From Rhodosorus marinus CCMP1338 (lineage: Eukaryota > Plantae > Rhodophyta): a stretch of 64,000 nt of DNA. The stretch lies in assembly GCA_029953675.1 (NCBI GenBank), contig JAMWBK010000004.1, positions 1,922,001 to 1,986,000 on the forward strand, in the 5' to 3' direction. The position numbers and the translations under genes are program-made. This document shows positions 4,261 through 56,722 of this stretch, one piece after another. The first letter of the stretch is position 1. Each line of letters begins with the position of its first letter. The notes below the pieces were generated by a model. The model saw nothing but the letters and a program-made list of their open reading frames with translations, searched no databases and was not told where the DNA came from.

Positions 4261-5520
4261 GCTCTATGTTGAATCAACATTTCCGCTCCATGCGGTCGCA
4301 CTGACTGTTTAGGGCTAAATTTGAACGGCGGAGAAGTCCAGCATGCATGCCCATAGTGTTGTATCTCACAGCTTGTGTTTAGAACAGAAGACAGTGTGCA
4401 GAGTTTTTATGTTATCTGGAGGGAGCACTTCATCTTTCGCCGCTGCACCCGTTTGATCAGTGCTGGGATGGCAGGACCTGTTGCCTAGGTATGCGTCCCA
4501 AAACCTCCAAATTGCAACACGTTATGATGAATCACGTTTCATGATATCATCTGGCACACCGAAACCGATCGTTCGTGTTTCTTGAAGCACAGACAGCATA
4601 GATCGACAGCTTTTTAGCCGCGACATGTGCGGGTTAGTTTGTTGCATCACCTTTGGGTAGACACTGTCCTTTACCAGAGTTGCAATCTGACTACTTATTG
4701 GGATGTTGAGTAGGTAACTGTAAACTTTACTCGGCAGCTGCCTAATGCAGCGCAACACTAATTCTATCAACCGTATGAGCAAACCCATCCTCCCTCCACG
4801 CTGCCTCGAAGAGCTTAATCAGGAATCCAGCTTGCTGAGGTGCAAGGCCCTCGTCTTTCCGCCTCGATCTGTACGCGCTTCGATGAGAGCAACCTACTGC
4901 ATAGGTGCGTGGAGATTTTAAGTGCTCCTTGGCTGAGACATGTGAAGGTGTAGTCACGTTCACCTCTTGAACATAATTTTGCGTTGGCTTAATATTTAAT
5001 ATTCGCCCGTGGTAGCCATCTTTTGACAGTGATTTTTAAGAACTGTGAGTCTCGGTCGCCTCGGGTGAGATTTCGAAATGCAGAGCTTTGCATCAACAGC
5101 TGTCCTGACCCAGACGCTCACTGCGATACGCTAGCACGTGTAGAGCGGATGAGGCAAGGGACCCATTCCGCCTACCGGCTGGCTGGAAGTTGCTAAAACC
5201 TCTAGAAGAGCTCACAATCCTTTCGTAGAGCTGTGGCTAATACTGTGGTTGAACGCTTTCTGTGGTCAGTTCTCAAATCCACACTGATCCAAATTCCGCC
5301 GCATTTTGCTGGGATTGCACAGCAAAGGTGGGACAAAGGTGATGGAGGCGGGAGAGTGCTACTTGTGACGGGACAAGGATAGGTGAAAGTGTGCTAGTAG
5401 GCAAGTCAGGGTATATAACTGATAGCGTCTGGGTCCATGAAACGGACCAAGAGTACGAGAGGGGTACCTCAGGACATGGTGGTGAGATGAGGCTCGTTGC
5501 GATCACGGAGCGAATCAGAG

Positions 5521-8500
5521 ATGCTATCTTTTGCTGTGGTTGGGGGGCGGGTTTTTGCACCTGCAGTGGTGGGGAAACTGGTTTCCCCCAAGGGCCATTC
5601 CGCTAATTTGAGAACGTTTTTACGGGCGACTTCCAGCGGTATATCTGCTGAACCCTTCAAGGTGACTGCTCCGAGGAAAACACGATCACCACACCAGTTC
5701 GTTTCGTTCACGAAAAGCATGTACGTGGCTCACATGAACGAGCTGGCGATTCGTGGACTGAGCAAAGCTGCAAAGGATCCAGTTTCAGAGTTAGATCACG
5801 CCTTGTTCGACACGGGCCTCAAGCATGAAGAAAACGTACTAGATCGGATCAAAAGCCTAGGGATCGACGTTGCGGTTGTTGATGACAATGACCCGGATAA
5901 GTGGCGACGAACCAGTGATTTTATTCAGCAAGGACGTGAAGTTATTTATCAAGCAGGCCTTCGAGACGATATTCTATCCGGTGTCGCTGACTTCCTGCTC
6001 CTCGCCCCTGGCGGAATAGACTGGATCAGCATCATGAAAGGAGACGAAAATGAGCTGAAAAGACTCCGCGAGGTACGGCAATCGGCTGATTTCCAACCAA
6101 CGTACGCGGTCCTTGAGGTCAAGTTAAGCGGATCCGCAAAGAGCGAGTATGTGCTCCAGGCACTCTGTTATGCAGATCTCGTTGAGGGGATCACAGGGAC
6201 AGTTTCGGACGACCTGTACCTCTGGTTGGGGGGACATCAAGCTCCAGTTCATGTACATAGGAACAAGTTTCTGCACTACTTCCGCGCCAAGCGCGCAGAA
6301 TTTGAAGACTTTCTGGCTTGTTTTGATCGAGGGATCCCACGGCATCCCAAGCCGGATCGCCCCGTAGACAGCCTGGGACCGTGGACGGCTGCCGCAAAAG
6401 AGCAGCTCAAGCAAGAAGATGCGTTGCAATTCGTTGCGGGTATTCGTAAGACTCAGATAGAAAGGCTGAATACGATGGGAATAACGACAATGGCCCAACT
6501 CGCGGCTTTGGAGAACCCTGCTGCAAACTTGTCCAAGCTCCAAAAGCAAGCTGAACTACAAATGGAAACTAAGCGTCGGCGAATGCTCGATCCAAACGCA
6601 ACTCCTGCCTACCGCGTACTTCACCACGACGGCGCACGAGTTGGACTTGCTTCACTACCTCCAGAGTCCGAAATGGACATTTACTTCGATCTAGAGGGGT
6701 TTCCTCTTTACGCCTTCGAGCACCAGGAAGGGCTGGAATACCTTTTCGGTTTTTCCGATCGGGAAAGGAACTTCACCGAGCTTTGGGCGCATGACCACGC
6801 GGAGGAAGAAGAGATTACTGCACAGTTCATAAGAGAAGCGCATAGCCGGTGGGAGCGCGATCCGGGTATGCATATTTACCACTACGGAGTTTACGAGATA
6901 ACGGCTTTGAAGAGAATAGTTTCGAGAGTTGCCGGCGAGATTGACCGCAAATTCGCGGACATGCTCGAGGCTGACGTATTCGTTGATCTGTTCAGAGTAG
7001 TGAGGCATGGCCTTATGCTTGGAGAGCAGAGCTATTCAATTAAGAAGGTGGAGAACCTATGTGGTGTTTCTAGGGAGGAAGATGACCTGGCTGATGCACA
7101 GTCATCTGTAGGCCTTTACCATCGCTTCCGATGCTCTACGGTTAAGGAAGAGAGAAGGAAGCTTCTTACCACAATTGCTGACTACAATAGGCAGGACTGC
7201 TATTCGCTGTCAGATCTCATTGACTGGCTGAGAAAGGAGCAAATTAAAGAGAAGATACGATACATACCTTGGAAGACACAGAAGCTCGAGGCAGAAGGAC
7301 TCAGTGAGGAGCAGATAGACCTGCTAAATACTCCAGGGGCATGCGGTGCTTCGCCTCAGCGCAGAATAGCAGATGCGGAGGTGATTGTTACAGGAAGAAA
7401 AGTGGAGGAAGACCTGATGGACCAAGGAAATGATACGCTAGGTCGGCTGGTGTCCTTTCATATTCGCGAGGGACGCCCCGCACGGGCACAGTTCCGCCAG
7501 AGGCTGACCGCGTACGACGAAAACGATTTCCTCACTGATACTCTCTGCATTGGACGGGTAAGAATAAGGAGCCAGGAAGCGGTGCAGCGTCGGAGATCAA
7601 CTGTATGGAGGGTAGTTGGCCGTTTCGACCCGGATCAACCGCACGTTGTGGAAGTGGGCAATCCAGTCGCTGTCTTGCGAAAGGGGAGAACGCAGGAGGA
7701 TTCAGTTCCCTTTGGAACTGTTAGGGCCCTTGAAAAGGGAGTTGTTGTAATCGATATAACCGGTACAGTTGTACCGTTCGAAGGCGAACTGGCGCTTGTA
7801 AGCACTGCGGAGCTTTCAATCTGCTCCGCGCCAATGCGTGAGGGAATTTTGCGACTTGCGCAGACTGCTCTCGGCAACGAAGAATCCTCGTGTGGCGGAT
7901 ACGGGATGGCACAAAATTTCGTAGAAAGGAGACCTCCAGTGATGCGGGGAGGCAAAGGCATCAGGTCGATAGTGGATGATGCTAGGAATGATCCGCGACT
8001 GCTAGCCGATCTTGTACATGATTTGGAGAAGTCCGTCCTGATCATTCAAGGTCCACCAGGATCTGGCAAGACGCAGCTAACATCGACAGTTATCCAGCTG
8101 CTCGCAAGAAAGGGTCTCAAGATTGCAGTTTCCTCGAACTCGCACGCCTCAATAGACAATGTGCTGCAGAAGGTTGCTGCGCTGGACTCTGACGTCGCGG
8201 TTCGCAAGGTATCATCTGGGAAAGTGACAAACGACGGGGACGAAATTCCGATCGTTCCATATTCGACTTCCGTACAGCAGGCTCTCAAGAAGGGAGCTGA
8301 TGTTGTTGGAGCAACCGTGTTCCAGATCAGCCGACAGGAAAACATTGGGGCGTTTGACCTCCTCTTCATCGATGAGGCTGGACAAGTCCCACTTGCAAAC
8401 TTCATATCCATGGCAGGGTGTGCGAAGTCTGCGGTTTTGGTACGAATTGTCACATCTTCCCTGGGCGCAATTACACCTGGTGCTCAACTTCCAAGCCTTT

Positions 8501-9504
8501 CAATTCGAGTGCTCTGAACATGCTGAGTTCGTTTTCCTTCTTCCGTTTTTTTTTTTTTTGTTGCCTTCTTGTGCCCCGCTTAATCTTACCAATTGACTCA
8601 TCAGGTTGGAGATCAGAGGCAGTTGGAAATGCCGATTCAGGGAATCCACCCGGCTGGTAGTGGGTTCTCATGTCTAGAATACCCGCTTGGTTCAGATTGC
8701 GTCACTGTTCCCAAAGACCTGGGACTGTTTCTCAATCGCTCCTACAGAATGGCTCCGAAAATCTGCTCATTCATTTCTGGTGCTATGTACGATGGCCGCT
8801 TGACACCTCATGAGAGAACTGAACAGAATTCCGTGGACATAAGCAACTCGGAGCTACTAACCAAGCGAAGTGGGGTTCAGTTCGTTGGTCATGTTGGGGA
8901 GAAGGGAAAGAATGTATATTCACAGGCGGAGGTTGATCTCACGAGGAGGGTGATCAAAGAACTCCTTGGAAGGCAGTTTTCAACTGCCTCACGGGAAGGA
9001 GAGCTCACGGAGGAGGACATTCTAATTGTTGCGCCGTACAACATTCAGGTATCTGCTCTCAAGAAAGACCTTGGTGGGCCCCCCTTCCGTATCGGTACAG
9101 TGGACAAGTTCCAAGGACAGGAGGCACCTGTGGTTATCGTAAACATCTGCTCCAACGGCGCCGAAGAGGACGATGAGAGAAGAGGTAATGGATCACGTCC
9201 CCTTGAAGGTTTGATCTACAGCATCTGATATTAGGTCTTGTTTCTACCAGGTGTGCGTTTTGCGCTGAAAAAGAACAGGTTGAATGTAGGTATTTCAAGA
9301 GCGCAATGCCTAACTGTAGTGATAGGATCCCTGGAGTTGAGCATGGCTCCAGCAGGCACAATTGCGGAGATGGAGTTGCTCAGCTTGTATACGAACATCA
9401 TGCAGGTTGGAAGCAATGAAAACGGGTTCCCGTGTTTTGACCTGGAAGCGGATGCGTTTAGACAAGATTCTCTAACCAGACATCTTGGGAACCTAAAACT
9501 GTAA
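5521..9504 (+). CDS. Bacterial-type TM0106/RecB-family PD-(D/E)xK nuclease + RNase H-like domain + SF1 (Upf1/Dna2-like) helicase fusion, ~1250 aa, with putative organelle transit peptide; introns 8440-8604 and 9185-9250
   Basis: Nuclease motifs SGVADFLL, EVKLS and QALCY. RNase H-like motifs YFDLEG, HIYHYGVYE, FVDLF and YNRQDC. Helicase motifs QGPPGSGKT, FIDEAGQ, VLVGDQRQL (formed by splicing), YRMAPKIC, APYNIQV, GTVDKFQGQE and NRLNVGISRAQ. Exon lengths 2919+580+254 keep the frame. Confidence 0.9.
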
Positions 9505-11020
9505 AAAGAAAACGCTTACATCCATCCATTGTGAATCCCGGGAGAGCCAACCCGTAAGTCTGCCAATTGGCAGGCCTGACTGCCCCGAACGTTCTTTCCG
9601 CGACGATGGTAAGGCTCTATTTGCTTCGCGGATCTAGGAAATTCTGACACAGTCTGTGACGTTTGCGTGGATCTCTGGAGGCCCCGACAAGTTTACTCAT
9701 CGATCCACAAAACCGGACAAACCAAGCTGGTCGAGACTTCATCATCTAATCCAATCGATCCGATTCCAAATCCAGCGCGTTGCTTATTACGCAGAATATG
9801 CTAAGGTACACACAAATCTGTGCACTCGCCTACGCCAACAAGTTCACTTTCCACCCTTTTAAACCCCCTTAAATACGTAATATTAGGATTTTATGTTACT
9901 TTTAGAGACCTAGTGTTCTAATCAGACGTTTCGGAAGGGGTAGTTTCAACAACCCACAAAGTCCTTATATTTCCAAATTTAGCCCACCACGACCGCGAAA
10001 CCTCGTCCCTGGGGTAGAGGAAGCTTCCACACGTCAACACAAATCATTCAAAAAAAATAATCACACCGTACGATAGTTAAGAACCAGTAAGTACACCCCC
10101 CACCCCACGAGATCTTATACAAACCTATTTCAAGTCTTTCCTAAATATAATAAAATTCAATGATTAGTTCCAAGAGCTTCTAGAAATTGAATCGATCAAA
10201 TTTTTCGTTCTTCCTTTTTATTTACAAAAAAGCATTCACCCTAAGGAAAAAAAGGAAAAAAAGGAAAAAAATACAAACCCCCGTTCGATCTGCGTAATAA
10301 TATATAGTTTTAATGGTTTTTAGGGTCACTTTTGGTATTTTTTTAAAAAAAGATAAGGCGTTTTTTGTTTTTTTTTTGTTGAGTTGGAATCGCCCGATGT
10401 CACCAATCACTTGTTGATGGATAAAAAAGAAAGAAAAGTCTCTCTGAAGGGGATGAAAGAGAATGGATCTTTTTTACGTATAGAGGAGAAAATTTTCGGG
10501 TTAAAAAAGGGTTTTGGGGGGGTTGGAGAGTGGGAGAGGGGACAAGGTTGGGAAGGAGGGGAAGGAGGGGCAAGAGAGAGGAAGGAGGAAACGTGTGAGG
10601 ACCTTTGGTGTTTTTTTTTGTTTGTTTGTTTGTTTGTTTTGGTTAATGACTGTTAAAATTTTTTTGGAAATGGTTTTGGTAAATCGTACTTTTAGGGAGG
10701 TAAAGAGACGAGTTCCGGAAGGGGATGAGTGAAGAGGTTTTATGTAGAGGGAAAGGTTTTGGGGCTGGGGCAGGAGTTTGGGAGGTGGGGTAAGGGTGTT
10801 GGACGTGTTTGTGAAGAATGCAGTTTTTATAGTTTTGGTAAGGTTTTGTAAGAGGTGTAGAGGGCAAGGTTTAGGGGGTTTTGGTTGTGGTCTGCCGGGT
10901 TAGGGTGAGTTTGGGTTGGGTCTAGATGGGCTGGGTTTTGAGTGTTTTGATGTGTTGAACTGGGACGGTTGCTGGGTTGGAGACGGGGAGGTGGGATTGG
11001 GTTTGGGCGATTGAGAAACG

Positions 11021-13062
11021 ATGTCAAGGAAGGGGAGAAAGGGAAAGCAACCGAAGGCATCGAAGAAGAAGAAGGAAGTTAGTGAAGGAAAGGGGAAGCC
11101 AGCGAAAGGAGGAAAGCTTCCGTATGAGAGTGAAGACGTGGTTGGAGGAGTACCGAGGTCGTTGATGAACCTTGGGAACACTTGGTGAGTGTTTTTTGTT
11201 TTCCTTTTGCCTGCTTAATGTACAGGCGTACGCTTGTGCCTGTATGGTCGGGTCGTTTTTTGCTTTAGCATTGTGGACTGGAAAGATTTTCTTGTCGTTG
11301 TGTTGTTGTCTTTGTACAAGAATACGAGGAGGAATACGTGCTCTGCAGGCAGAATTGCCCAACTGACAAGCTTCTGAATTTTTTTTTTTTGAACCAGTTT
11401 TTTCAACTCAGTGCTGCAGAGTTTGATGAGTCTGAGCTCCTTTCGGGATGTGTTTACAGATAATTCACAATTGGCAGAGGGTAGACTGACTCTGAGTTTT
11501 CTGGACTTTGTGAGCGCATTGAAGTCCGATAAGAAGAGCAATGGAGCGGTAAATCCAGGAAAACTGCTCAAGGAGATTGGGGGCCTAAATCCTCGGTTCA
11601 AGGAGAGAACTCAAGAAGATTCACACGAACTGTTCCGTACATTAGTGAACGGGCTCATCGATGAAGAGAGGTGAGCGTGAAATCCAAACGGACAGGCAAT
11701 ATAGGGATTCTACGTGCTTGATCGTGAAGAACTAACTGAAACCGAGACTGGGTTTCTGTTGTTTTCGTCGTCAGGTCCGGCAGTGATGAAAGCAGTAGCA
11801 CCGGGGACTCGAACGGTTCGACAGTCTCGTACATCGAGGGCTTGTTTCAAGGAACGCTGTGCAGCACTGTGCTCTGCACCGAATGCGGAAGCAAGTCTAC
11901 TGTTCGTGAGCCCTTCCTGGATCTAACCGTTGCCTTGTCATCCGCAAAAGGCGTAGGGAGTACGAACGCAGCTAGATCCCCTCCGGCCCAGCCCAGGAAT
12001 ACAGAAACGGAAGTCTCCACGTCAAAACATCAGAAGAAGAAGAAGAAGAAGAAGGAGAAAGTCAAGAAGAAGGAGAAAGTCAAGCATCGGAAAGGAATGA
12101 AGTATGCTTCGCTTGACAATGGTTCCGATCACGACCTCCTTCCGTCACCAGTAGCTGAAGAAGGGGAGGAAGACCCATCCCGAGCTGAAGCAAGTGATGC
12201 CGATATAGGCTCATTGTTCAATATTTTTGAGCCGGAAGAGGGAGAAGCGAAGGAGGAGGAAGCTGAGGATACCCTGCTCCCCTCATTGTTCGAAGAACAA
12301 GACGACACTGAAAGTTTGTACGGAGATCTTGAAGACATCAGCCTCGAGACGGACTCTAAAGGCAGGATTCTCTCGGACGACATCCTCGCCCCTCTTCAAG
12401 AATGCCTCTCAAGGTTCTTGGATAGTGAGATCATGGACGGAGATAACAAGTTGATATGCGAGGCCTGCACGAAGCGAGAGCAGAAGGATTTCAGGAAGAG
12501 CATCCCGCGAGAAACTCGTTCCAGGTCTTCTTCAGAATCAGAGAAAACACGTGAGACGTTTTCGGATTGTTCTGATACCACTTTGGGTAGTTCAAAGTCC
12601 CTGAAAGAAAAGGCTGAGAGCACAGATAGTGAAGACACCATTGACAGGGACAAGACGACGCCCACTGCGGAGACAACTGTCAAGCCAGTATACACGAAAG
12701 CAACGAAGACTTTCAGTTTGGAGAGTATTCCCGAGAATCTGGTCCTACAGTTGAACAGATTTTATCAGCATAGCTTGCTCGGAGCGATGAAGAAGGTCAC
12801 TGGATTTTGTGAATTTCCTTTTGTGCTGGACATGAGTCCTTTCACTAACAAAGGTGGAGATCAGGAGTACCGCTTAGCTGCGTTGATATGTCATTCTGGG
12901 ACCATGCGATCTGGGCACTATATCGCCTACGTTCGCAGAGAGAGTGCCGAAGGTGAACTGTGGTTTTATTGTAGCGATTCCAACATCAAACTTGTGAACG
13001 AAAGCGAAGTTTTAGAGTCAAGGCCGTATATGTTCTTCTACGAGCTTCTCACCTACTCTTGA
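11021..13062 (+). CDS. Ubiquitin carboxyl-terminal hydrolase (USP, peptidase C19) with long acidic/basic insertions; introns 11185-11397 and 11671-11774
   Basis: The Cys box NLGNT|CFFNSVLQ is restored by splicing. QEDSHELF, CTEC, LVLQLNRF and the His box HSGTMRSGHYIAYV are present. Confidence 0.92.
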
Positions 13063-13590: not shown

Positions 13591-14688
13591 TCAAAACGGA
13601 TCCTCCTCTGGGAGCTCATCAGATCGATAATCCGCTTTCGAGGAGTCGCTCTTCTTCGATGAGGAATTTTCTCCCCAGTTCGTGCTCATGTTCGAAAACC
13701 CTCCCTTCTTCCTGGGCATTAGCCCGCCTCTCGTTCCTCTCGCGAAGCTGTCATCTGGTAAATTTTGGGGCACGTTAACCTCATCTCTCCCCTCACTCGC
13801 TGTCCTATCAGCCGAATAGCCTGACTTGTACGGTTCCGGCGTGTCCGGTGCGTTTGAAGCCACCCAGGAGCTTGTGGAAGAGCCAGAACTATCAGAGCTC
13901 GAGTCCGATGGCATCTTGGGAGGCTTGAAATAGTACTCATTCTCCTCAGAAAATTTTGTTCCGGGGGCGTATTGCTGATTGCTCGAATTTCCTGAAGGGC
14001 TCGATGGGTTCCTCGGAGGTTTAAAATAATAATTGTCTTGTCCGGAAGAACTCGGTTCCTTTCTATCCTGAGGCCCATCCCAGGTTGAATCAGGAGATGT
14101 TGGGTAGAGCGAACCCGAACCTCTCGTCTGCATGTCCTCCGGATATGAGTTGGCGTCGTTTGTGTACATTCTGTTTCTGTCCAGGATTTTCAGCGTATTC
14201 GCAGTAATTTCCACACTGAAAAATTCCTCCCCTTCCTTCTCCCAAGTCCCGAGAGTCGGTGCACCCTCTATACCAACCAAGGTTCCTTCTTTAAAACTCT
14301 TCTCGACCAACTCAGCGTCAAACCTGAAAGCCAGTATCGTAAAGTAGTCATTCCCTGGTGACGCGGGATAGTTCCTCTGAACACAGAGCTTGAACTTTGC
14401 CACTTTCATTGTCGGCGTCGTTCGAACGTCGGGAGGAGATGCTACATATCCAACCATCGTCACAGTATTGATATCCGGCATGCCTAGCCATGACCCATCA
14501 TCGTCCACAACCATATCAAAAACATCATCAAACTCATTCACTCCGTCTCCCTCACCCCCCGCAGGTGCCTCTTCCTTACCTCCTTCCAGTCGAACCACGC
14601 TATGCCTCCACCTGCGTGCCCTACCACACCCAACTAACCTACTCCACCTCCCGTTAACTGGCACTCCATTCCCAACGAACGCAAACAT
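13591..14688 (-). CDS. ssb: Bacterial-type single-stranded DNA-binding protein with plastid-like transit peptide, long disordered linker and acidic C-terminal tip; intronless, 365 aa
   Basis: OB fold INTVTMVGYVASPPDVR...KGTL-like KEGTLVGIEGAPTLGTWEKEG..VEITAN. The N-terminus is MFAFVGNG.. and the C-terminus is DELPEEDPF. Confidence 0.88.
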   Translation of the reverse strand: MFAFVGNGVPVNGRWSRLVGCGRARRWRHSVVRLEGGKEEAPAGGEGDGVNEFDDVFDMVVDDDGSWLGMPDINTVTMVGYVASPPDVRTTPTMKVAKFKLCVQRNYPASPGNDYFTILAFRFDAELVEKSFKEGTLVGIEGAPTLGTWEKEGEEFFSVEITANTLKILDRNRMYTNDANSYPEDMQTRGSGSLYPTSPDSTWDGPQDRKEPSSSGQDNYYFKPPRNPSSPSGNSSNQQYAPGTKFSEENEYYFKPPKMPSDSSSDSSGSSTSSWVASNAPDTPEPYKSGYSADRTASEGRDEVNVPQNLPDDSFARGTRGGLMPRKKGGFSNMSTNWGENSSSKKSDSSKADYRSDELPEEDPF

Positions 14689-15120
14689 CGTTTTCAGAAA
14701 GAAAAAAAACACACAACTCCTCCCCCTCTCCCCCTCCAAAAACTTGCACCTCCCTCACTCCCTTTCGCCTCAACTGAATTAGTTTTCTCAAGCTAATAAC
14801 ACAATCACCCCCTCCTCCTCCCAGAAGCTTTCCCCCTCCCACATACTCTTCTCCTTTACAACAGAGTTCGCCTCTTCTTCTTTCTCCACTCAGAAATTCC
14901 GTTCCACATTGACAAAAATGCTTCCAGCTCTCGCACGACAGCTACACAACTCGATCCATTTCCGCCTTCAAAGCTGTGAATGACCATGAAGAAAGTCTTC
15001 TTATCCATTTTCCTGTCGAGAGCGAGTTCCATGAGAGATGTACTCTGCTCATCAGGAGGCACAAGCCGTATGACAACTCGTATAGAAACTTTAAAACCCA
15101 AGTTGAGGCGGTCGGGATAG

Positions 15121-27723: not shown

Positions 27724-28830
27724 ATGGCTCCACAAGCTCAATTGGAAGAGGAAGAGCTTCAACTGTATGAAGATGCTGGGCCTATGCTGGTTTCACGATT
27801 GGAAGGCACCTCAGTTGCTGCTGGGGATGTGAAGAAGCTGCAAGAAGCTGGGTACTACACAGTAGAGTCCGTTGCGTATAGTACAAAGAAAGCCCTTCTC
27901 GGAGTTAAGGGTATCAGCGAGGCCAAGGCAGACAAGATCCTTGCTGAGGCCAAGAAACTGATCCCTATGGGCTTCACGTCCGCAACCAACATCCACAAGC
28001 AACGGCAGGACATAATCACTCTGACAACCGGGAGCCAAGATCTAGACAACCTGCTTAAAGGTGGTATTGAGACCGGATCGATCACGGAGGTTTTCGGAGA
28101 GTTTCGGACTGGAAAAACCCAGCTTTGCCACACTCTTTGTGTTGCGTGCCAGCTGCCAGTTGAGAATGGAGGCGGGTCAGGTAAGGCCCTGTACATAGAT
28201 TCGGAAGGAACTTTTAGGCCTGAAAGATTGAAATCCATTGCTGAGCGGTACGGTTTGAATGGAGACGATGTGCTTGATAATGTGGCGTTCGCCAGGGCCC
28301 ACAACTCAGATCATCAGCTCCAGCTTTTGAATCAAGCATGTGCTCTGATGTCGGAGAGCAGGTGCGTTATGACAGATGATGTATCCGTCAGTGCGCTCAA
28401 CAGGGAAAACCCCGGAAGCTGATTTTTTTTTGCTTACCCTCCACTGCACAATAGATACGCCCTCATTATCGTGGACAGCGCTACCGCATTGTATAGAACG
28501 GACTACATTGGCCGAGGTGAGCTTGCTTCAAGGCAACAGCACATGGCAAAGTTTCTCCGATCACTTCAGAAGATCTGTGACGAGTTCGGCGTGGCAGCGG
28601 TGATCACAAACCAGGTCGTCGCCCAAGTAGACGGCGGAGCGATGTTCGTATCCGATCCGAAGAAGCCGATAGGAGGAAATATCATCGCTCACGCCTCGCA
28701 GACCAGACTATACTTGCGCAAGGGCCGCGGTGAGAACCGAATATGCAAAATCTACGACTCTCCTAGTCTTCCTGAAGCGGAGGCGACTTTCGCCATCGGA
28801 GAAGACGGAATTATTGATCCTACGGAATGA
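27724..28830 (+). CDS. RAD51: DNA recombinase RAD51; intron 28362-28454
   Basis: Walker [21 protein letters not shown] and GGNIIAHAS are RAD51-type rather than DMC1-type. Confidence 0.97.
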
Positions 28831-42425: not shown

Positions 42426-44098
42426 CTACTTTGACCACCACAACCTCGTCATACCGTCAATACCACCTGCAGTAGAGCTACATCAACCTGTGCGGTGAGC
42501 CTTAGTCCTCCTATCTGCTTCTCCAAAATCAACTTGTTGTGCCTGGATTCCGCGTGAGAAGCAACCTTGGCGCAAAATCCGAAGCAAACCAGCTCCACCA
42601 AAAAAAAACTAGCCGTTCGCAATGAGAGTTTTAAAATATAATGAATAGTAAATTAAAACGGAGAATTGACCAGAAGAAAAAAAAACAAATTTGTAAATGA
42701 CAGTCTGTCCCAACTCCGCAGTTGAATTCCAGCAGAAAAATATATGCGCGGATGAAACAAGAAATTCATTAGCTAACCTATCAGTTTTGACAGCAGAACA
42801 TTACTTTTGGCAATATTTGGATTTATTTCAATTTAAAGAGTATCCCGCACTTTATTGGCTATACTAAAGCTCTAAGCCAATAGTTTCGCTACATGTTTTT
42901 GGAATCCGAATATTATTTATAAAATAAACGCAAATCTATTCAAAAAAAATTTGCGTACGGGTTCAACTCGATTCTAGTACACGGTACTAATTGTGTGAGC
43001 ACCACGGGGTACTCAACGAAAAGGACTCTGGTCGAAGGCTTACTTCCCAGGGCCTCTTTTCAGATTTGAATGACGCAGTTTATAATCCCATGCGTCTGAT
43101 GTCATAGGATGGGCTTCATTTCACCTCCCATGCCCTGAACTCCTGCTGTCACGAACCTTCCATCGCCGCGGTGCAACGCCCGCCGCCCCCTCCCCAAAGG
43201 AAAACTTCTGTTGCTCGCACCCAGCTCACCCCCAGAAGGAGTGTCTAGGTCTCTCACCCAGAAAACGCGAGCGAAAAACAACGAAATCAACCACTTCCTT
43301 CTCCGCACGGCCTCCCAAGCGAAACACCCTCAACCACTCCGCTAAAGCATAAACCAGACAGACTGTCTCAAACCAGTAAACAGGCTGTCCAAGCAGCGTT
43401 TCTAGATCGAGGCAACGGCCTCGGTCCGAAAGAAAAAGGGTTAAAAAATATAGACACAAAATTAATAATTTTCACGTTCTCTTCTCATGAATTGTGAGAA
43501 AGGAGGACGCGACCTTGATGCGAGACTCTCCCACTCTCAACTCCCTCAAAATTTCGGCCTAAAAACTCTTCTGTTTCCGATGAAGCTTTGAGAAGTCCAT
43601 ATTTCTTTTTCTGGGTGGATGCGAGGGGGGGTATTAAATCAAGCGATAATCTACTCTTACCTCCTCGAGGTTTTTCGAGGGGTATGAATGAATCAGTTAC
43701 TATACCTCTTTTCATCTATTTGTTTGGGAATTATTGAATTGAATGGTCGGGATTGGAAGCATGTAAGAAGAAGGGGGGGTCCTAAGTATCCTGAAATTGT
43801 TCTGGGAGGAGGAAAAATCGGAGGGGAGGGGGGGAATTTTTAACGATGGTGAGGACAGAAGTGAAGTAGTGGTGAGTGAGGGAGTAGACGTTGGATTTGG
43901 GGTTGTTGGGGAGGGTGAGTGGTTTGCGTCGGGGAGAGCTAGTGTACGTATGAACCATTTTGGAAAATTTACGAGATGATCTACTTTTATGAGGATGGGG
44001 TGGTGCTATAGATTTGGCTTTTTTGCGTTCTCGGGGATGGTACTTTTTTGGTGAGCGTTCATGAAGCGAGTTGGAGCGTTCGTGCCTTGAGTTCCGGC

Positions 44099-45619
44099 AT
44101 GCTGAGAGGGCTGCTGAGGGGTGTCGGGACCAGCTTGGCTCGTACACCCCTGGGGAAGAGGAGGTCCATAAATTATTTGCACAGCTCGACTCCAGTTCAA
44201 GGATGGTTTGCAAGGGACGCGTTAAGGAGGAGTCCCCGTCCAGGTGGTGTAATAGTGCTCTTGAGAGCTTGTCCAACAGCCGACGATCTTCATGAATGCG
44301 TGTTATATGGAGAGCAACTTGGGAGAGCCTCGACATGGTTGTGCAAATTGTATTCTGTCGCATTTGCTTGCGTGGGAAAATTGGGTTCTGGACCGGACTC
44401 TGATAATGCGGGGAAGCTCCTCGGCGCTCTAGCTGCTCGTGCTAAGGATATGCAGGACGTCTTCGATGGCCAAACTTACACAGCACTGGTCGGTGCTTGC
44501 GTTGGCTGTGGAACGTTTGATCTTGCTGAGAGAGTTTTCACAAATTTTAGAGCCTTGGCTGGAACCGAACCTACGACTATTTGCTACAATAGTATGATTC
44601 ACGGTTATTCAAAGTCTGATCAATTCGAAAAGGCCTCGGCACTCATTCGGGAGATGCGGTCTAAGGATATCCCCAGGACCGCCACGACGTACTCGCCACT
44701 TCTCGAGTATTTGGCTAGACGGAGGCGCATCCCAGAAGCGAAAGAGATTTTGGAGAGAATGAGGCAGGATGAGATTCAATATGACGTTCGGCTTCACAAT
44801 GCAATTCTTTTTATGTACTCTTGCGGGAAGGAAACCTCCAAGGCCTTGGGTTTGTTGCTCGAATTTCTTAAGGAAGAAGAAAAGGGCGGAATGCGGGTGT
44901 CGAGGGAAATGTTCCATTCTGTTATGGACGGTTTTGCCAATGCCGGGGATAAGGCTACTGTTCGGAAGTTGTACACCCAAATCGGACTGAGGTTCAAACC
45001 TGATTCGTACTCATTTACCCTGATGATTCGCTCATGTCTTCTCCACGCCACAATACATGGAACCTGGTCAGAAGATGTTGAGGCTGCGTTATCCGTTTGG
45101 GAGGACATGAAGCGAGCTAGAGTAGCCCCAGCAGTGATCGCCTATAACTCCATGATAATGCTAGTGGGGAAGACTAGCGTTCAGGACATGCTTTCCTTCT
45201 ACGAATCCATGATCGAGAAAGGACAAAAGCCGAACGTTTTTACGTACTGTGCTCTCGCAGAGGGGTTTAGGGGTATCGGGGAGGAGGAAAGGGCGTTGGA
45301 GTTTATGGAGAAGGCCAGGAATGCTCTAGGTCCTGGTGATGACTTTCGCTCTTATCAGTTGATACGGTTCCAGCTCGAGACTGGAAACGTAGCTCTCGCG
45401 GTTGCACTGCTGAACTCCGCGAGCGCGGCTCATGCAACTAACTTCAACGTGGTTCTCAACTATTTAATGAGAAGATCAATGTATGACAAAGTGGACGACG
45501 TGGTGAGCCTGATGAAACTGAAACGCGTTCCTTTTAACCAAAGCACCTACGATATACTAGTCCGTAGGGCGGGACTGAAGAGTGAGGCTACGCAAAAAAC
45601 ATACGAGAACCAAGCATAG
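44099..45619 (+). CDS. Pentatricopeptide repeat (P-type) protein, probably mitochondrial
   Basis: Presequence-like MLRGLLRGVGTSLART.. and repeats such as TICYNSMIHGYSK, ATTYSPLLEYL, VIAYNSMIML and PNVFTYCALAEGF. Confidence 0.9.
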   Translation: MLRGLLRGVGTSLARTPLGKRRSINYLHSSTPVQGWFARDALRRSPRPGGVIVLLRACPTADDLHECVLYGEQLGRASTWLCKLYSVAFACVGKLGSGPDSDNAGKLLGALAARAKDMQDVFDGQTYTALVGACVGCGTFDLAERVFTNFRALAGTEPTTICYNSMIHGYSKSDQFEKASALIREMRSKDIPRTATTYSPLLEYLARRRRIPEAKEILERMRQDEIQYDVRLHNAILFMYSCGKETSKALGLLLEFLKEEEKGGMRVSREMFHSVMDGFANAGDKATVRKLYTQIGLRFKPDSYSFTLMIRSCLLHATIHGTWSEDVEAALSVWEDMKRARVAPAVIAYNSMIMLVGKTSVQDMLSFYESMIEKGQKPNVFTYCALAEGFRGIGEEERALEFMEKARNALGPGDDFRSYQLIRFQLETGNVALAVALLNSASAAHATNFNVVLNYLMRRSMYDKVDDVVSLMKLKRVPFNQSTYDILVRRAGLKSEATQKTYENQA

Positions 45620-52790: not shown

Positions 52791-55700
52791 TTACTTTATT
52801 CTTGGTCGCTTCGAGCTTGCCGAAAGGCCGAATATGTCGTCCTCCAATGTTCGCCTTTCTTCGAGCACAAAACGCATTGCCTCGAGATTAAATCCAAGAT
52901 TATCTCTATGGCGATTAACGCGGGAGCGCAAGAGCCCCGAGATGCTAGAAACCAGGGATCTGTTTCCGCCAGAAACAATCTGATCTTGATGGGTATGAAC
53001 TATGTACATGACAGTGCGATAAACAAGTTCAATATCTACACAGCTGGCCGCCTCAGTCTTCAGCCACGAGAGGCAGTACGTTAATATCAGGGTCGCCTGC
53101 TTTAGCGGCAACAACTGTAGGGTTGCTTCCAAGTCCGCTCTTCTCACATTCTTCAGGACACGCAGGACATAGTCCTCTGCTGAGAGTCCCACAAGCTCTA
53201 CGCTAGGTGGCTCGCTAGGCTCCTCCTCCCTTCTCAGCTTTTCCAGTTCTCCGAGCTCCAATGCTTCAAGCAGCTTATCACCTCCGGTTATGGCGTCCAG
53301 CGTTCGTCTCCCGGCAAGCGAGGTATCGGTTGGAACCTGTTCATTTTTTGCTTGGAATGTAAGTCCTGACTGGCCAGTCACGATTCTTTTTGACAATGTC
53401 AGGTCGCCCTTACCACTTCAGGAACTATTGCCGTAGACGATCGTCTCTGTCGCTCATCTTCTTGAAGCGTTCCCTCCAGCACTGCATCAAGCCTCTTGTT
53501 TTTCTCGTCCTCTATAAACATCATTTCGTCTGATCTCTTCCATACTCTTATGCTTCTGTCATGGCTTCCACTGACCACAATTTCGCCGTCGGCGCTAGTC
53601 GTACATGTCCATACTGACGCCCAAAAAGAACGAACACACATCGCATTCAGGGACGAAGACATTCACATATCTACTAGGAGAGGTTTTATGGATCTGTATA
53701 GACTGCTGCACGCATTTTCCAAAACTCAGAACGCGTGTCACAGAAACAACGACGGTTCCAAGCGGAACTCAGCAAACTGAAGACATGATAGCCAGAGTTG
53801 CTCCACATGTACTTCGCTTCTGTGACACTATGTGAGTTGGAAAGCTTGGGTAGCGGCAGCCTATACATAGCCAGAAATCATATGCATCCGATTGAACGCA
53901 GGTGCTTCCCTACCTTCACATCTCTGTCCAGGCATCTCTGTGATCAGTTCAAACTTATCTGCATCCCAGTACTTCAACGTACCATCCCTACTGCCTGAGA
54001 ACAGCATATGTGTATAAGGTTGGAAGACGACGGTCATAACCGATCCATCATGCGCTCGCAGACTCTTCCGGCAATCGCCAAAATCAAGGCCCCAGAGTTT
54101 AACGCTCTTATCGGCCGAACCAGTAGCAAGCATTGTCCCATCACTCGACACATCCAGAGAGAGTACAGGAAGCTTGTGGCCATAAAAAGTAAGGAAGGGC
54201 TTCAGTGAATCCAGGTAGAATGCTCTCACGGTTGAATCCAGCAAGGATACAAGTATGTATTTGGAATCATTTGTAATCCGCACGCAGAGCACATCTTCGT
54301 TCAACTCCAAAATCCTTTTGGTAACCAAGCTGAACTTGCCCTCGCTGTCTTCAACAAGATTCCAAAACTTGACCTTTTTGTCGCTCCCACATGTTACGAA
54401 GCCGTCGTCGCTAGAGGGCACATCGATCCCCCAAACAGAACCATCGTGTGCTGTTTCAGCGAGGCAAGCTTCGACTCCAGATGAAAAGTCGAAGATTTGC
54501 ACTTGCCCCGCTTTGAACCCAGCAACGACAAACTTCTCAGAGGCAATTAGCTTGCAACAAAGCCCGTATCCCACAGTTTCAATCGTGCGCAGGCACACTC
54601 CGGTTACGGGGTTCCAGACCTTCAAAGATTTCGCTGACGAGAGAGAAAGCAAGGCCGAATCGTCACTGGTCATTGTCAACGAGCGAACATCTCCTCGATC
54701 GCCAGGCTTGTCAACCAACATGATGCTTTTCAGTGTTCCTCCTCGTCCTAATCCGATCTCAAGAACCTCGAGCAAGTTGTGGTGCATGTGTGCCTGACGA
54801 TAGACACGGTGATTCATATAGTGAGCACGTTTCCGAGCAACAGAGCTTTCGAAACCGTAGTACCTTACCATAATACGAAGGTTTTGTTGGTTCTCAAGAA
54901 AAGACGCGGATCTCACTTTGTAATCAGTTTTTACAGATCGAGCGTGGTGAAAGAAATCTACTGCCTCCAGTGCCAGATCACCTACGGGCTGGACTTCTTG
55001 CTCGTTCGAACCACTTTTCGCCTCCCGTCGCGTTCTTCGTCTCCGTCGATGCTTTTTCGCATCAGCTTCATTCCTTACGTGGAACAGTTGAATTGATTTC
55101 TCCGTTCCGTGGCCAAGGAGTATAGTTCCTGCTTTGTTGAAGCGAAGGCAGATACATCTCGAAGAGCCCTCGCGTTCAAATGATCCTAACGGGACCAGTT
55201 TTATCCCATTTCGATCTGTAGCATCCTCGAGCTTCCATACACGTATATCCTGATCAATGGATCCTGTCACAAGTAGGTCCTTTCCAACATCCATTGACCA
55301 GACTTCCCCTGGATGCCCCACAACGGTTTGCACGCAGCTCTGTGTACTGATCTCGTATATTTTCAACAGTCCGTCTTTAGAAGCGGTGATAATGTGCCCG
55401 GAGATAACCCGTAATGCAGTAATCTCATTCGAATGCGCACCGTGAATGCGGAATCGCCCTTTCTCGGCGGCTGGATCCCAGAGAACTACCTCACCGTCTG
55501 CGGAACCAGATACGAAGAGTGTCTCACCCTCAGGATTATTGCCTCCATCCGCCCAAGCAAGACTCGTTACAGCAGTTACGTGCCCGTTGAAAATGCCTTC
55601 CAGTTTTGACTCGACAATCGACCAAGTTCTGATGGACCCATCCGCGTATCCGGCAGCCACTCGTGTGCCGTCGCCGTAGGCGGAGAGAGAAGTGACTTCA

Positions 55701-55924
55701 CGTGCCTCTCTAGCTCCATCGTTCACAAATCTTGCAACCTCCGATCCACTTCTCAGATTCCAAACGATTACCGTGTCCACAGCCGGGGATACCGCCAAAT
55801 TCACTCGGTTTCCATACCTCCTCCTCAACTCCTCGCCCTTCTCCAACACCTCGCTCCCGCATCGAACTCCAGCAACCACTCCAAAAGATTTGTCAAACTG
55901 GTACCTTAAATAAGCTTTCACCAT
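52791..55924 (-). CDS. WDR3: U3 snoRNP WD-repeat protein WDR3/UTP12/Dip2; several introns
   Basis: MVKAYLRY..SFGVV, many WD40 repeats, FYGHKLPVLSLDVSSD..LATGSADKSVKLWGLDFGDCRKSLRAH and a C-terminal Utp12 domain (DLEATLQLLP..NLGFNLEAM). Confidence 0.95.
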
Positions 55925-56722
55925 ATGTCCTTTCTCGAGCCCCGGCCAAAGGCCTTCCCAACACCGAAAACCCACAGGGCAAAAAAAAAAATTTCTTAAT
56001 GTGATGCACTCACGATCAAACTTCTAGATGCAAACGAGAATCCAGTTCCAACATCTTACAAACCTATCGACCTTTTCCTATACTTGTCTAAGCTCTCCAC
56101 AGATGCACAGGCCCAATCCACTGCTCCTTCACCCTCCCCAAACTTATCAAATGGCTTAGTGGCCATTCCCCGTCATCACCAATAGTGATTCCGTCAAAGA
56201 GTCACCTTCCATATCAGTCAAAAATATGATAATTATAAAATATATGAAATATATTCAATCATTAAAATTATTGATTGATATTAGTTAATGACACTTAGAG
56301 CATTTTGTGGGGGATATTCTCGTACCGTTTAAGAGTCCGTGTAAAAGTCAGCCAAGATGGAGAATAAATTACAAATATATGAATATTTATATTCCTTGGA
56401 TATTATGGATTGAACATTATAGGTGACGCTTAACATGTTTTCATGTTGGTACGGGGTTGATTGGATGGAACCGGTCAACGGCGGTGACCATTTTTTCGAG
56501 GTTGGTTGGGATGATTAGAGGAATGGAAAGGACTTCGTTTACGTGAATGATGTGGAGAATTATTAAGGCTTTTGTGGATAGAATGGATGGCCTGGAGCTA
56601 TGGTTTGATATAACACGGAGGGACTCGCCCTAGTTGTCCTGATTTTTGCTTATTGCTTGGTGAGCCGCTTTTTGGCGGGACTTGATTTTCAACTTAGGAT
56701 AGGATGGACTATTAGGAGCTAG

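Follow-up and report, generated by a model that had tools for sequence, protein, structure and literature searches.

The TM0106 proteins (TIGR03491), also classified as COG2251, form a large bacterial family that combines three nucleic-acid enzymes on a single chain. In the classification of Majorek and colleagues the family appears as F.13/COG2251, a combination of a PF13482 domain with a DUF83 PD-(D/E)XK nuclease and tandem AAA domains; it was placed in the 3'–5' exonuclease clade beside the exonuclease of family-B polymerases and was listed as uncharacterised (Majorek et al. 2014, PMC3985635). A literature search found no functional or biochemical study of any TM0106/COG2251 member. The subject of this analysis is a gene at positions 5521–9504, on the forward (+) strand, of a 64,000-nucleotide stretch of the unicellular red alga Rhodosorus marinus CCMP1338 (contig JAMWBK010000004.1, positions 1,922,001–1,986,000; hereafter the window). 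Its 1250-residue product is a new eukaryotic member of this known, wholly uncharacterised family, and the red-algal clade to which it belongs provides a eukaryotic setting in which the function of the family can be tested.

Among described enzymes the closest in layout is Dna2, in which, as in the algal protein, a PD-(D/E)xK nuclease lies N-terminal to a superfamily 1B (SF1B) helicase on one chain. A second analogy is proposed with AddAB and RecBCD, which likewise couple a helicase motor to two nuclease activities so that both strands of a DNA end are processed. The AddAB and RecBCD machines consist of several subunits, are driven by SF1A (UvrD-like) motors and carry their RecB nuclease at the C-terminus, whereas the algal protein is a single chain driven by an SF1B motor, with one nuclease at the N-terminus and a further one of the DEDD type; the UvrD_C_2 profile scored 19.8 bits against the algal protein, below its cut-off of 27.4. 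Because of the Dna2-like layout, the protein is read here as an organelle-imported, single-chain enzyme of ancient bacterial origin that would process DNA ends in the manner of Dna2 or of an AddAB condensed into one chain, a reading to which a probability of about 0.55 is attached. If so, it would be a further candidate among the few bacterial-type enzymes of DNA maintenance in red-algal organelles.

Three enzymatic domains on one chain

A first-pass annotation, made from the sequence alone, had described the product as a protein of about 1250 residues in which a RecB-like nuclease, an RNase H-like domain and a helicase of the Upf1/Dna2 type were all apparently intact, and HMMER recovered each of the profiles named there above its cut-off. 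TIGR03491 ('TM0106 family RecB-like putative nuclease') scored 151.8 bits (cut-off 97.45, E = 3e-44) over aa 127–570, corresponding to profile positions 60–462 of 462, and PF13482 (RNase_H_2) scored 76.6 bits (cut-off 22, E = 2.9e-21) over aa 387–570. The helicase region matched AAA_11 (61.3 bits), AAA_12 (94.1 bits) and AAA_30 (40.8 bits), again above the Pfam cut-offs. The algal protein thereby exceeds the curated threshold for the TM0106/COG2251 family, with which it shares domain order, catalytic residues and approximate length. Residue conservation was judged on an alignment of 113 homologues, 20 of them eukaryotic; at 1250 residues, and with the residues of all three active sites conserved, the chain bears out the earlier impression of an intact enzyme, and the sequence landmarks given for it proved exact.

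The Cas4/RecB-like PD-(D/E)xK nuclease occupies aa 56–280 (5686–6360, +) and retains D157, E199, K201, Q213 and Y217, arranged as E199-V-K201 (encoded from nt 6115) and Q213xxxY217; a red-alga-specific insertion follows its ADFLLL strand. In a separate AlphaFold2 model of aa 51–577 (predicted local distance difference test, pLDDT, 94.3), Foldseek ranked Cas4 first (8D3L, E = 1e-3, probability 1.0; also SSO0001, 4IC1), which makes Cas4 the best fold match for this domain; many archaeal family-B DNA polymerases, aligned through their exonuclease region, came next, followed by Dna2. No four-cysteine set was found among the invariant or near-invariant columns of the nuclease domain, the sole conserved cysteine in aa 56–280 being C216, so the Fe-S cluster present in Dna2, AddB and Cas4 is missing from the family. 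From Cas4 the algal nuclease differs both in the missing Fe-S cysteines and in its fusion to an exonuclease and a helicase.

Between the nuclease and the exonuclease, a helical segment resembling a helix-hairpin-helix (HhH) element (aa 300–345, 6418–6555, +; ..VAGIRKTQIERLNTMGITTMAQLA..) is conserved in the family and helical in the AlphaFold2 models. It is possibly a DNA-binding element, the HhH label being drawn from its sequence pattern. The exonuclease-like domain itself, a DEDDy-type member of the RNase H superfamily, spans aa 385–575 (6673–7245, +) and coincides with the PF13482 match. Its four acidic residues, D390, E392, D489 and D559, are invariant in the 113-sequence alignment, as is, in the family alignments, the Exo III-like Y555xxxD559 motif; D390-L-E392 is encoded from nt 6688, and the YNRQD pentapeptide corresponds to aa 555–559. 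A six-stranded beta-barrel at aa 676–761 (7546–7803, +; strands at 626–711 in the AlphaFold2 model, whose numbering is offset by 50) follows the FHxRExxPAR helix and precedes the helicase. Taken in isolation, the nuclease, HhH-like and linker segments matched no Pfam family significantly.

The Upf1/Dna2-like SF1B helicase core covers aa 831–1200 (8011–9351, +, across both introns of the gene). Motifs I, II, III, V and VI are conserved in the family alignments, with GPPGSGKT encoded at 8050–8073 and DEAGQ at 8371–8385, and K850, D951/E952, Q955, R1021, Q1143, R1176 and R1183 are conserved among the 113 homologues. Sequence matches of the helicase in the PDB comprised IGHMBP2, Upf1, Sen1 and Dna2, and the AAA profiles and Foldseek gave the same assignment. 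For the AlphaFold2 model of aa 51–1250 (pLDDT 84.9, predicted TM-score 0.84), Dna2 (5EAN, 5EAX, 5EAW) was the best full-length structural match, with E = 1.6e-26 over about 1200 aligned columns for 5EAN; IGHMBP2, Upf1, SETX/Sen1, ZNFX1 and nidovirus nsp13 followed the Dna2 entries.

The correspondence with Dna2 has clear bounds. Searched against the PDB, the family profile matched only helicases and residues 470–857 of Dna2, the latter alignment starting upstream of the helicase-core matches obtained from the other PDB helicases. The nuclease halves share no detectable sequence similarity, the phmmer and profile matches beginning only at Dna2 residue 640 or 470. Unlike Dna2, the algal family has no four-cysteine Fe-S cluster, and it carries an extra DEDDy exonuclease-like domain between nuclease and helicase; the low TM-scores against Dna2 (0.34–0.38) indicate that the domains are arranged differently. 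The algal protein is an analogue or distant relative of Dna2, not its orthologue.

The same helicase core raises the question of an RNA-surveillance enzyme of the UPF1 or SEN1 type, since its matches in sequence and structure include Upf1, IGHMBP2 and Sen1, and two red-algal orthologues bear names of this kind in GenBank: that of Gracilariopsis chorda (PXF47079.1, P0301) is annotated as 'Regulator of nonsense transcripts 1-like' and that of Porphyridium purpureum (KAA8491523.1, P0168) as 'DNA polymerase alpha-associated DNA helicase A'. The likeness is limited to aa 835–1200, however, and the N-terminal 580 residues are a TM0106 module; Pfam detected neither the UPF1 CH zinc domain nor any other domain specific to UPF1 or SEN1, and the nearest relatives are bacterial. 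UPF1 orthology was rejected on these grounds, and a surveillance role is regarded as very improbable. The public names are automatic transfers based on the helicase half only and are for that reason misleading, and the present assignment corrects the labels 'UPF1-like' and 'DNA polymerase alpha-associated helicase A'.

An intact, transcribed and correctly spliced nuclear gene

The coding sequence runs from an ATG at 5521 to a TAA stop that ends at 9504, and its 3753 nt are distributed over three exons, all on the + strand. Exon 1 (5521–8439, aa 1–973) encodes the presequence, nuclease, exonuclease, linker and beta-barrel, and helicase motifs I–II; its end is set by the open reading frame (ORF), by the GT donor at 8440 and by a transcript alignment block ending at 8441. 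Intron 1 (8440–8604, 165 nt, GT..AG, phase 0) lies between AVL and VGDQRQL, splits helicase motif III and has a T14 polypyrimidine tract near its 3' end. Exon 2 (8605–9184, delimited by transcript alignment) encodes aa 974–1166 and the first base of codon 1167, with helicase motifs III–V. Intron 2 (9185–9250, 66 nt, GT..AG, phase 1) stands directly ahead of motif VI, between DDERR and VRFALKKNRLNV, and exon 3 (9251–9504) supplies the remainder of codon 1167 through aa 1250 and the TAA, including motif VI (RLNVGISRAQ) and the C-terminal tail. Splicing rebuilds ...SAVL|VGDQRQLEMP... in motif III and ...EDDERR-G-VRFALKKNRLNVGISRAQ... in motif VI.

The spliced product is identical over 100% of its length to the GenBank entry 'hypothetical protein NDN08_002359 [Rhodosorus marinus]', so the gene model was already present in public annotation, as a hypothetical protein without a function. 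The genome was published alongside a study of minicircular mitogenomes (PMC10250338; assembly JAMWBK000000000), a paper in which the nuclease-helicase gene goes unmentioned.

The two GT–AG introns postulated in the first-pass annotation are supported by a transcript from a second Rhodosorus strain (MMETSP, L002, 4873 nt), which shows 89–93% nucleotide identity to the window. It aligns in three blocks, 5371–8441, 8604–9185 and 9249–9535, that are contiguous in transcript coordinates, so that the splicing of both introns follows the model exactly. Two sibling MMETSP transcripts, P0123 and P0124, retain intron 1 and encounter an in-frame stop within it (window 8440–8517); their product would be truncated just past helicase motif II, within motif III. 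These transcripts could reflect regulated intron retention or unprocessed pre-mRNA. At its other end, L002 extends about 1.07 kb 5' of the start codon, and this upstream part (nt 1–1069) is colinear with window 4322–5215 at only 69–91% identity; no upstream intron was seen in this comparison, and the upstream part is either a long 5' untranslated region or the result of merged overlapping transcripts.

Comparison of the two Rhodosorus strains yielded a ratio of nonsynonymous to synonymous substitution rates (dN/dS) of 0.23 (Nei–Gojobori; dN 0.061, dS 0.26), with values of 0.17–0.29 across the enzymatic domains, against 0.77 for codons 1–55. The gene is under purifying selection, in agreement with the earlier view that it has been retained.

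With its closest non-algal relatives all bacterial, at 30–35% identity, such a gene might be suspected of stemming from bacterial contamination, from a chimeric contig or from a recent transfer specific to Rhodosorus. Each of these possibilities is refuted by the introns, codon usage, neighbours and red-algal orthologues. Two spliceosomal introns are removed in the mRNA, and codon usage is that of the host: the G+C content at third codon positions is 0.525, inside the 0.50–0.59 range of eight neighbouring genes, and relative synonymous codon usage correlates with that of the neighbouring genes (r = 0.61) and not with that of cyanobacterial homologues (r about 0). The gene lies on a 3.19 Mb contig between ordinary eukaryotic genes, among them a ubiquitin hydrolase (UCH), Rad51, a PPR protein, WDR3 and TTC39, and orthologues with eukaryotic neighbours occur in at least four other red algae. 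An artefactual or very recent origin is accordingly put at next to nil, and the R. marinus gene is an intact, transcribed and correctly spliced nuclear gene for a TM0106/COG2251 family member, resident in the genome as had been proposed at the outset.

A red-algal clade and its bacterial relatives

A profile of exon 1 was searched against 1.84 billion representative proteins. Directly below the sequences already known came longer proteins (1218–1400 aa, P0151–P0166) that scored 420–530 bits and stood mostly above the bacterial proteins, and the eukaryotic clade so defined comprises at least 20 sequence clusters. All members that could be named through cluster look-up are red algae: G. chorda, Eucheuma denticulatum (EukProt EP00177), Chondrus crispus (XP_005714461.1) and P. 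purpureum, which together with Rhodosorus cover Florideophyceae, Porphyridiophyceae and Stylonematophyceae. The best 150 representatives included no member from green algae, glaucophytes or other non-rhodophyte eukaryotes, and within the reach of the searches the clade is restricted to Rhodophyta. JGI metagenome contigs scanned with the eukaryote-specific motifs YVAHMNE and LQ[AT]LCYAD contained no confirmed relative, and a literature search on the red-algal orthologue accessions returned no paper mentioning any of them.

These proteins are set apart from their bacterial relatives by shared sequence features. The motif RSPxxLVxFRRSR[FY]VAHLNEL is absent from bacterial proteins, as are the insertion past the ADxLL strand and a GACG motif; FHxRExxPAR replaces the bacterial FHxRExKPxWW, and GDQQQLEMP the bacterial GDQMQLxQP. 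A basic presequence completes the additions common to the red-algal clade, and Rhodosorus further differs from bacteria in its two introns.

Both introns recur, at the same positions and in the same phases (VL|VGDQRQL, phase 0; RR-N|AGFVLRKNRLNV, phase 1), in an orthologue on a 6.8 kb Logan contig (locus L001, SRR22824290) that also carries an eIF4E gene. The L001 gene splices to an intact protein of 1266 aa (P0003) with 47% identity to the Rhodosorus protein, and the introns common to the two suggest that L001 comes from a lineage related to Rhodosorus. Two further members (L083 and L084, on contigs of 40 and 109 kb) are uninterrupted ORFs with eukaryotic neighbours, namely a protein kinase, Cmc1 and an XPD-like helicase. 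As other red-algal copies are uninterrupted, the two introns are derived in the Rhodosorus/L001 lineage; acquired after the transfer, they show cleanly how a gene that came from bacteria can gain introns. A Na+/H+ exchanger gene lies upstream of the orthologue on the opposite strand in both uninterrupted loci (L083, 1–1577; L084, 2250–4382), a synteny absent from the Rhodosorus window.

In bacteria, a scan of one genome per species identified 599 relatives from many phyla, each 29–34% identical to the algal protein, and thousands of bacterial relatives share its length and domain set, which confirms that the three-domain order is typical of bacterial TM0106 proteins. Trees were built by neighbour joining only, from Kimura distances, with 84 and then 113 sequences and 100–200 bootstraps. 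Eukaryotic sequences were monophyletic with 96–100% support, the florideophyte-containing clade and the pairing of Rhodosorus with L001 each reached 100%, and the sister of the eukaryotic clade was a divergent group that included two Vulcanococcus picocyanobacteria (90–92%). The smallest distances from the eukaryotic clade were those to the cyanobacterial clade. A profile search with the eukaryotic clade, which did not recover its own red-algal members, returned bacterial proteins whose top scorers were cyanobacterial (Alkalinema and a Leptolyngbya-containing cluster). In the nuclease motif, ExK is found in 19/19 eukaryotic and 14/14 cyanobacterial-group sequences, as against DxK in 73/79 other bacteria.

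From these data we infer a single entry of the gene into an early red alga from a bacterial donor, possibly a cyanobacterium. Since the red-algal clade is monophyletic, the transfer from bacteria is ancient; within red algae the gene is old and vertically inherited, with one conserved orthologue across classes. The first-pass annotation, which had proposed horizontal or endosymbiotic acquisition, had set against it the prospect of a vertically inherited clade spread widely across eukaryotes. A vertically inherited clade does exist, within the red algae, but it is not eukaryote-wide and is confined to Rhodophyta as far as searched. That interpretation is partly supported: it was right in kind and needs re-scaling, from a novelty of one genome to an old gene widespread in red algae.

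The bacterial context was sampled through 119 immediate neighbours of 60 bacterial TM0106 genes. No conserved partner gene emerged, the 119 neighbours falling into 108 Pfam families of which the commonest, WYL, occurred four times, and a model in which the protein works with an operon partner was rejected on this basis. Besides WYL regulators, the neighbours include RmuC, HEPN, DUF499, SNF2 and components of BREX, DISARM and Hma. No CRISPR-adaptation genes were found among the sampled neighbours, three of which matched the PADLOC Cas3c model. The family was also found on 76 plasmids, 28 of them conjugative and including cyanobacterial plasmids of Acaryochloris and Picosynechococcus; the phage search revealed no phage carrying it. 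On Acaryochloris plasmid pMB05 (L087) the gene is flanked on one side by HsdR, SprT, McrC and an AAA ATPase and on the other by a YhaV toxin and an integrase; on Vibrio tubiashii plasmid p123 (L088) BrxL and SMEK genes lie to one side of it and a TrlF ATPase to the other. Because of this defence-island context on plasmids, bacterial TM0106 proteins may act as a stand-alone, single-gene defence or plasmid-competition factor that is absent from PADLOC.

Described anti-phage systems resemble the algal protein in one region. Mokosh (MkoA/MkoC), Hhe, ProA and PLuB share with it an Upf1-like SF1B helicase core, their matches covering aa 944–1198 only and their N-terminal modules being unrelated. Curated cut-offs of PADLOC-DB 2.0 were missed by far (ProA, for example, 26.5 vs 1500 bits), and none of the known systems in that collection (Mokosh, Hhe, Dpd and others) gave a full-length match.

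These observations invite the view that the algal protein is a domesticated bacterial immune gene that recognises and destroys foreign nucleic acid, such as viral or plasmid-like DNA, in the cytosol, the nucleus or an organelle, and so retains the part that its bacterial relatives seem to play. In its favour are the stand-alone bacterial homologues, often beside WYL regulators, HEPN, DUF499 or parts of BREX or DISARM; the 76 plasmids, 28 conjugative; the copies on pMB05 and p123 among defence genes; and a helicase half that resembles the MkoA/MkoC helicases. Yet the defence-island association is a raw neighbour listing, and the family is not a described system in PADLOC 2.0, where its matches are restricted to the helicase region. 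The presequence-like extensions on red-algal copies suit organellar housekeeping better than cytosolic immunity, and steady purifying selection (dN/dS 0.23) on a single orthologue across classes is unlike typical fast-evolving immune genes. On the last three counts immunity, although the main rival, is ranked below organellar DNA-end processing and is considered unlikely.

A bolder scenario, equally doubtful at present, would join the two roles. An enzyme of cyanobacterial or plasmid origin would have been kept for about a billion years in red algae, an undescribed stand-alone bacterial defence against plasmids or phages having become a guardian within the plastid that breaks down linear, damaged or foreign DNA. 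A gene from bacterial defence islands may in this way be tied to the maintenance of organelle genomes. If true, a bacterial immune module would have been converted into a eukaryotic factor for organelle genome maintenance or immunity, and TM0106/COG2251 would have its first function.

Predicted targeting, proposed function and genomic setting

The preferred reading of an imported, DNA-end-processing enzyme depends on the N-terminal extension, a putative organellar (plastid-type) targeting peptide at aa 1–55 (5521–5685, +; MLSFAVVGGRVFAP...). In Rhodosorus it contains nine Lys and Arg against one Asp or Glu, 18% Ser/Thr and a Phe at position 4. Bacterial homologues have a median of 10 residues before the conserved SPxDL anchor, whereas most red-algal proteins with complete N-termini have 49–108, the shorter being P0153 (19) and P0159 (9). 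The red-algal extensions are not conserved in sequence, are Ser/Thr-rich and contain 7–22 Lys and Arg against 0–8 Asp and Glu, and that of Rhodosorus evolves almost neutrally (dN/dS 0.77 in its first 55 codons). Extensions that are basic, rich in Ser/Thr and unconserved, and in Rhodosorus near-neutral, bear the signature of an organellar presequence, and they favour the view that the red-algal protein is probably organelle-targeted.

As to the destination, a Phe-based plastid-targeting motif has been described for rhodophytes and glaucophytes (PMC7038456). Early Phe or Trp residues are seen in the N-termini MLSFAVV, MGAGCFV, MLFARHL, MTAFGVF and MGWRATFF, with F4 in both Rhodosorus strains, F6 in L001, F3 in P0152, F4 in P0158 and W3/F7 in P0157. 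On this pattern the plastid is somewhat favoured over the mitochondrion as the predicted destination.

The same enzyme, with the same origin, might instead be imported into mitochondria, or into both organelles, and serve the maintenance of mitochondrial DNA, including the minicircular mitogenomes of Stylonematophyceae. Basic, hydroxylated and acid-poor extensions also fit mitochondrial presequences, the early Phe is absent in several orthologues, and Rhodosorus and its relatives do have unusual minicircular mitochondrial genomes (PMC10250338). Against this, the Phe at positions 3–7 in Rhodosorus, L001, P0152, P0158 and P0157 matches the rhodophyte plastid motif, and the affinity of the gene is cyanobacterial, not alphaproteobacterial. 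The gene also occurs in red algae with ordinary mitogenomes, and a specific link to the Stylonematophyceae minicircles was rejected on account of its presence in Florideophyceae and Porphyridium. Mitochondrial or dual import is viewed as an outside prospect, of the same order as the immune role.

SF1B helicases move 5'–3', as established for Dna2, Upf1 and IGHMBP2. In the proposed mechanism, the protein would be imported into an organelle, the plastid somewhat in preference to the mitochondrion, where its SF1B motor would translocate 5'–3' along one of the two strands at a DNA end. Cleavage of the 5' strand would fall to the PD-(D/E)xK site and trimming of the 3' strand to the DEDDy site, so that linear or broken organellar DNA would be resected or degraded, for recombination-dependent repair or replication or for the clearance of damaged DNA. 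The history that would go with it begins with a bacterial donor, possibly a cyanobacterium, from which an early red alga would have acquired the gene, whether endosymbiotically, with the plastid ancestor as source, or through ordinary horizontal transfer; the gene would then have gained its targeting peptide, and the two introns would have been added in the Rhodosorus lineage.

Several observations weigh against this proposal. The Foldseek matches of the N-terminal half have marginal E-values (1e-3 to 0.5), though they are consistent with the assignments from hidden Markov models, and Upf1-like helicases include RNA enzymes, so that DNA is the presumed substrate. The presence of bacterial relatives in plasmid defence islands points to an ancestral role in immunity over one in repair. 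For the targeting argument, the early Phe is absent in Eucheuma and P0156, the first Phe of the Porphyridium protein is at position 11, and Logan contigs may have yielded miscalled start codons. For the origin, the sister relation with Vulcanococcus joins two long branches, and with that group removed the eukaryotes join the main cyanobacterial clade at only 17% support. Endosymbiotic gene transfer also predicts green-algal or glaucophyte copies, and the best 150 representatives held none.

The genes around the nuclease-helicase in the window include a ubiquitin C-terminal hydrolase with a lysine/glutamate-rich insert (11842–13062, +), a Rad51 exon (27724–28422, +), a PPR-repeat protein (44048–45619, +) and WDR3 (53861–55975, −). 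About 4 kb downstream of the nuclease-helicase gene, on the opposite strand, lies a gene for a bacterial-type single-strand DNA-binding protein (SSB) with a long N-terminal extension (13591–14739, −; PF00436, E = 1.9e-12), probably an organellar SSB. Read from its first ATG, this protein begins MFAFVGNGVPVNGRWSR..., with an early-Phe look like that of the nuclease-helicase presequence. In the composition profile, positions 10001–12000 show a strong positive GC skew (0.32), and ORFs in this interval contain low-complexity runs, such as KKKKKKEKVKKKEK in the UCH-domain ORF.

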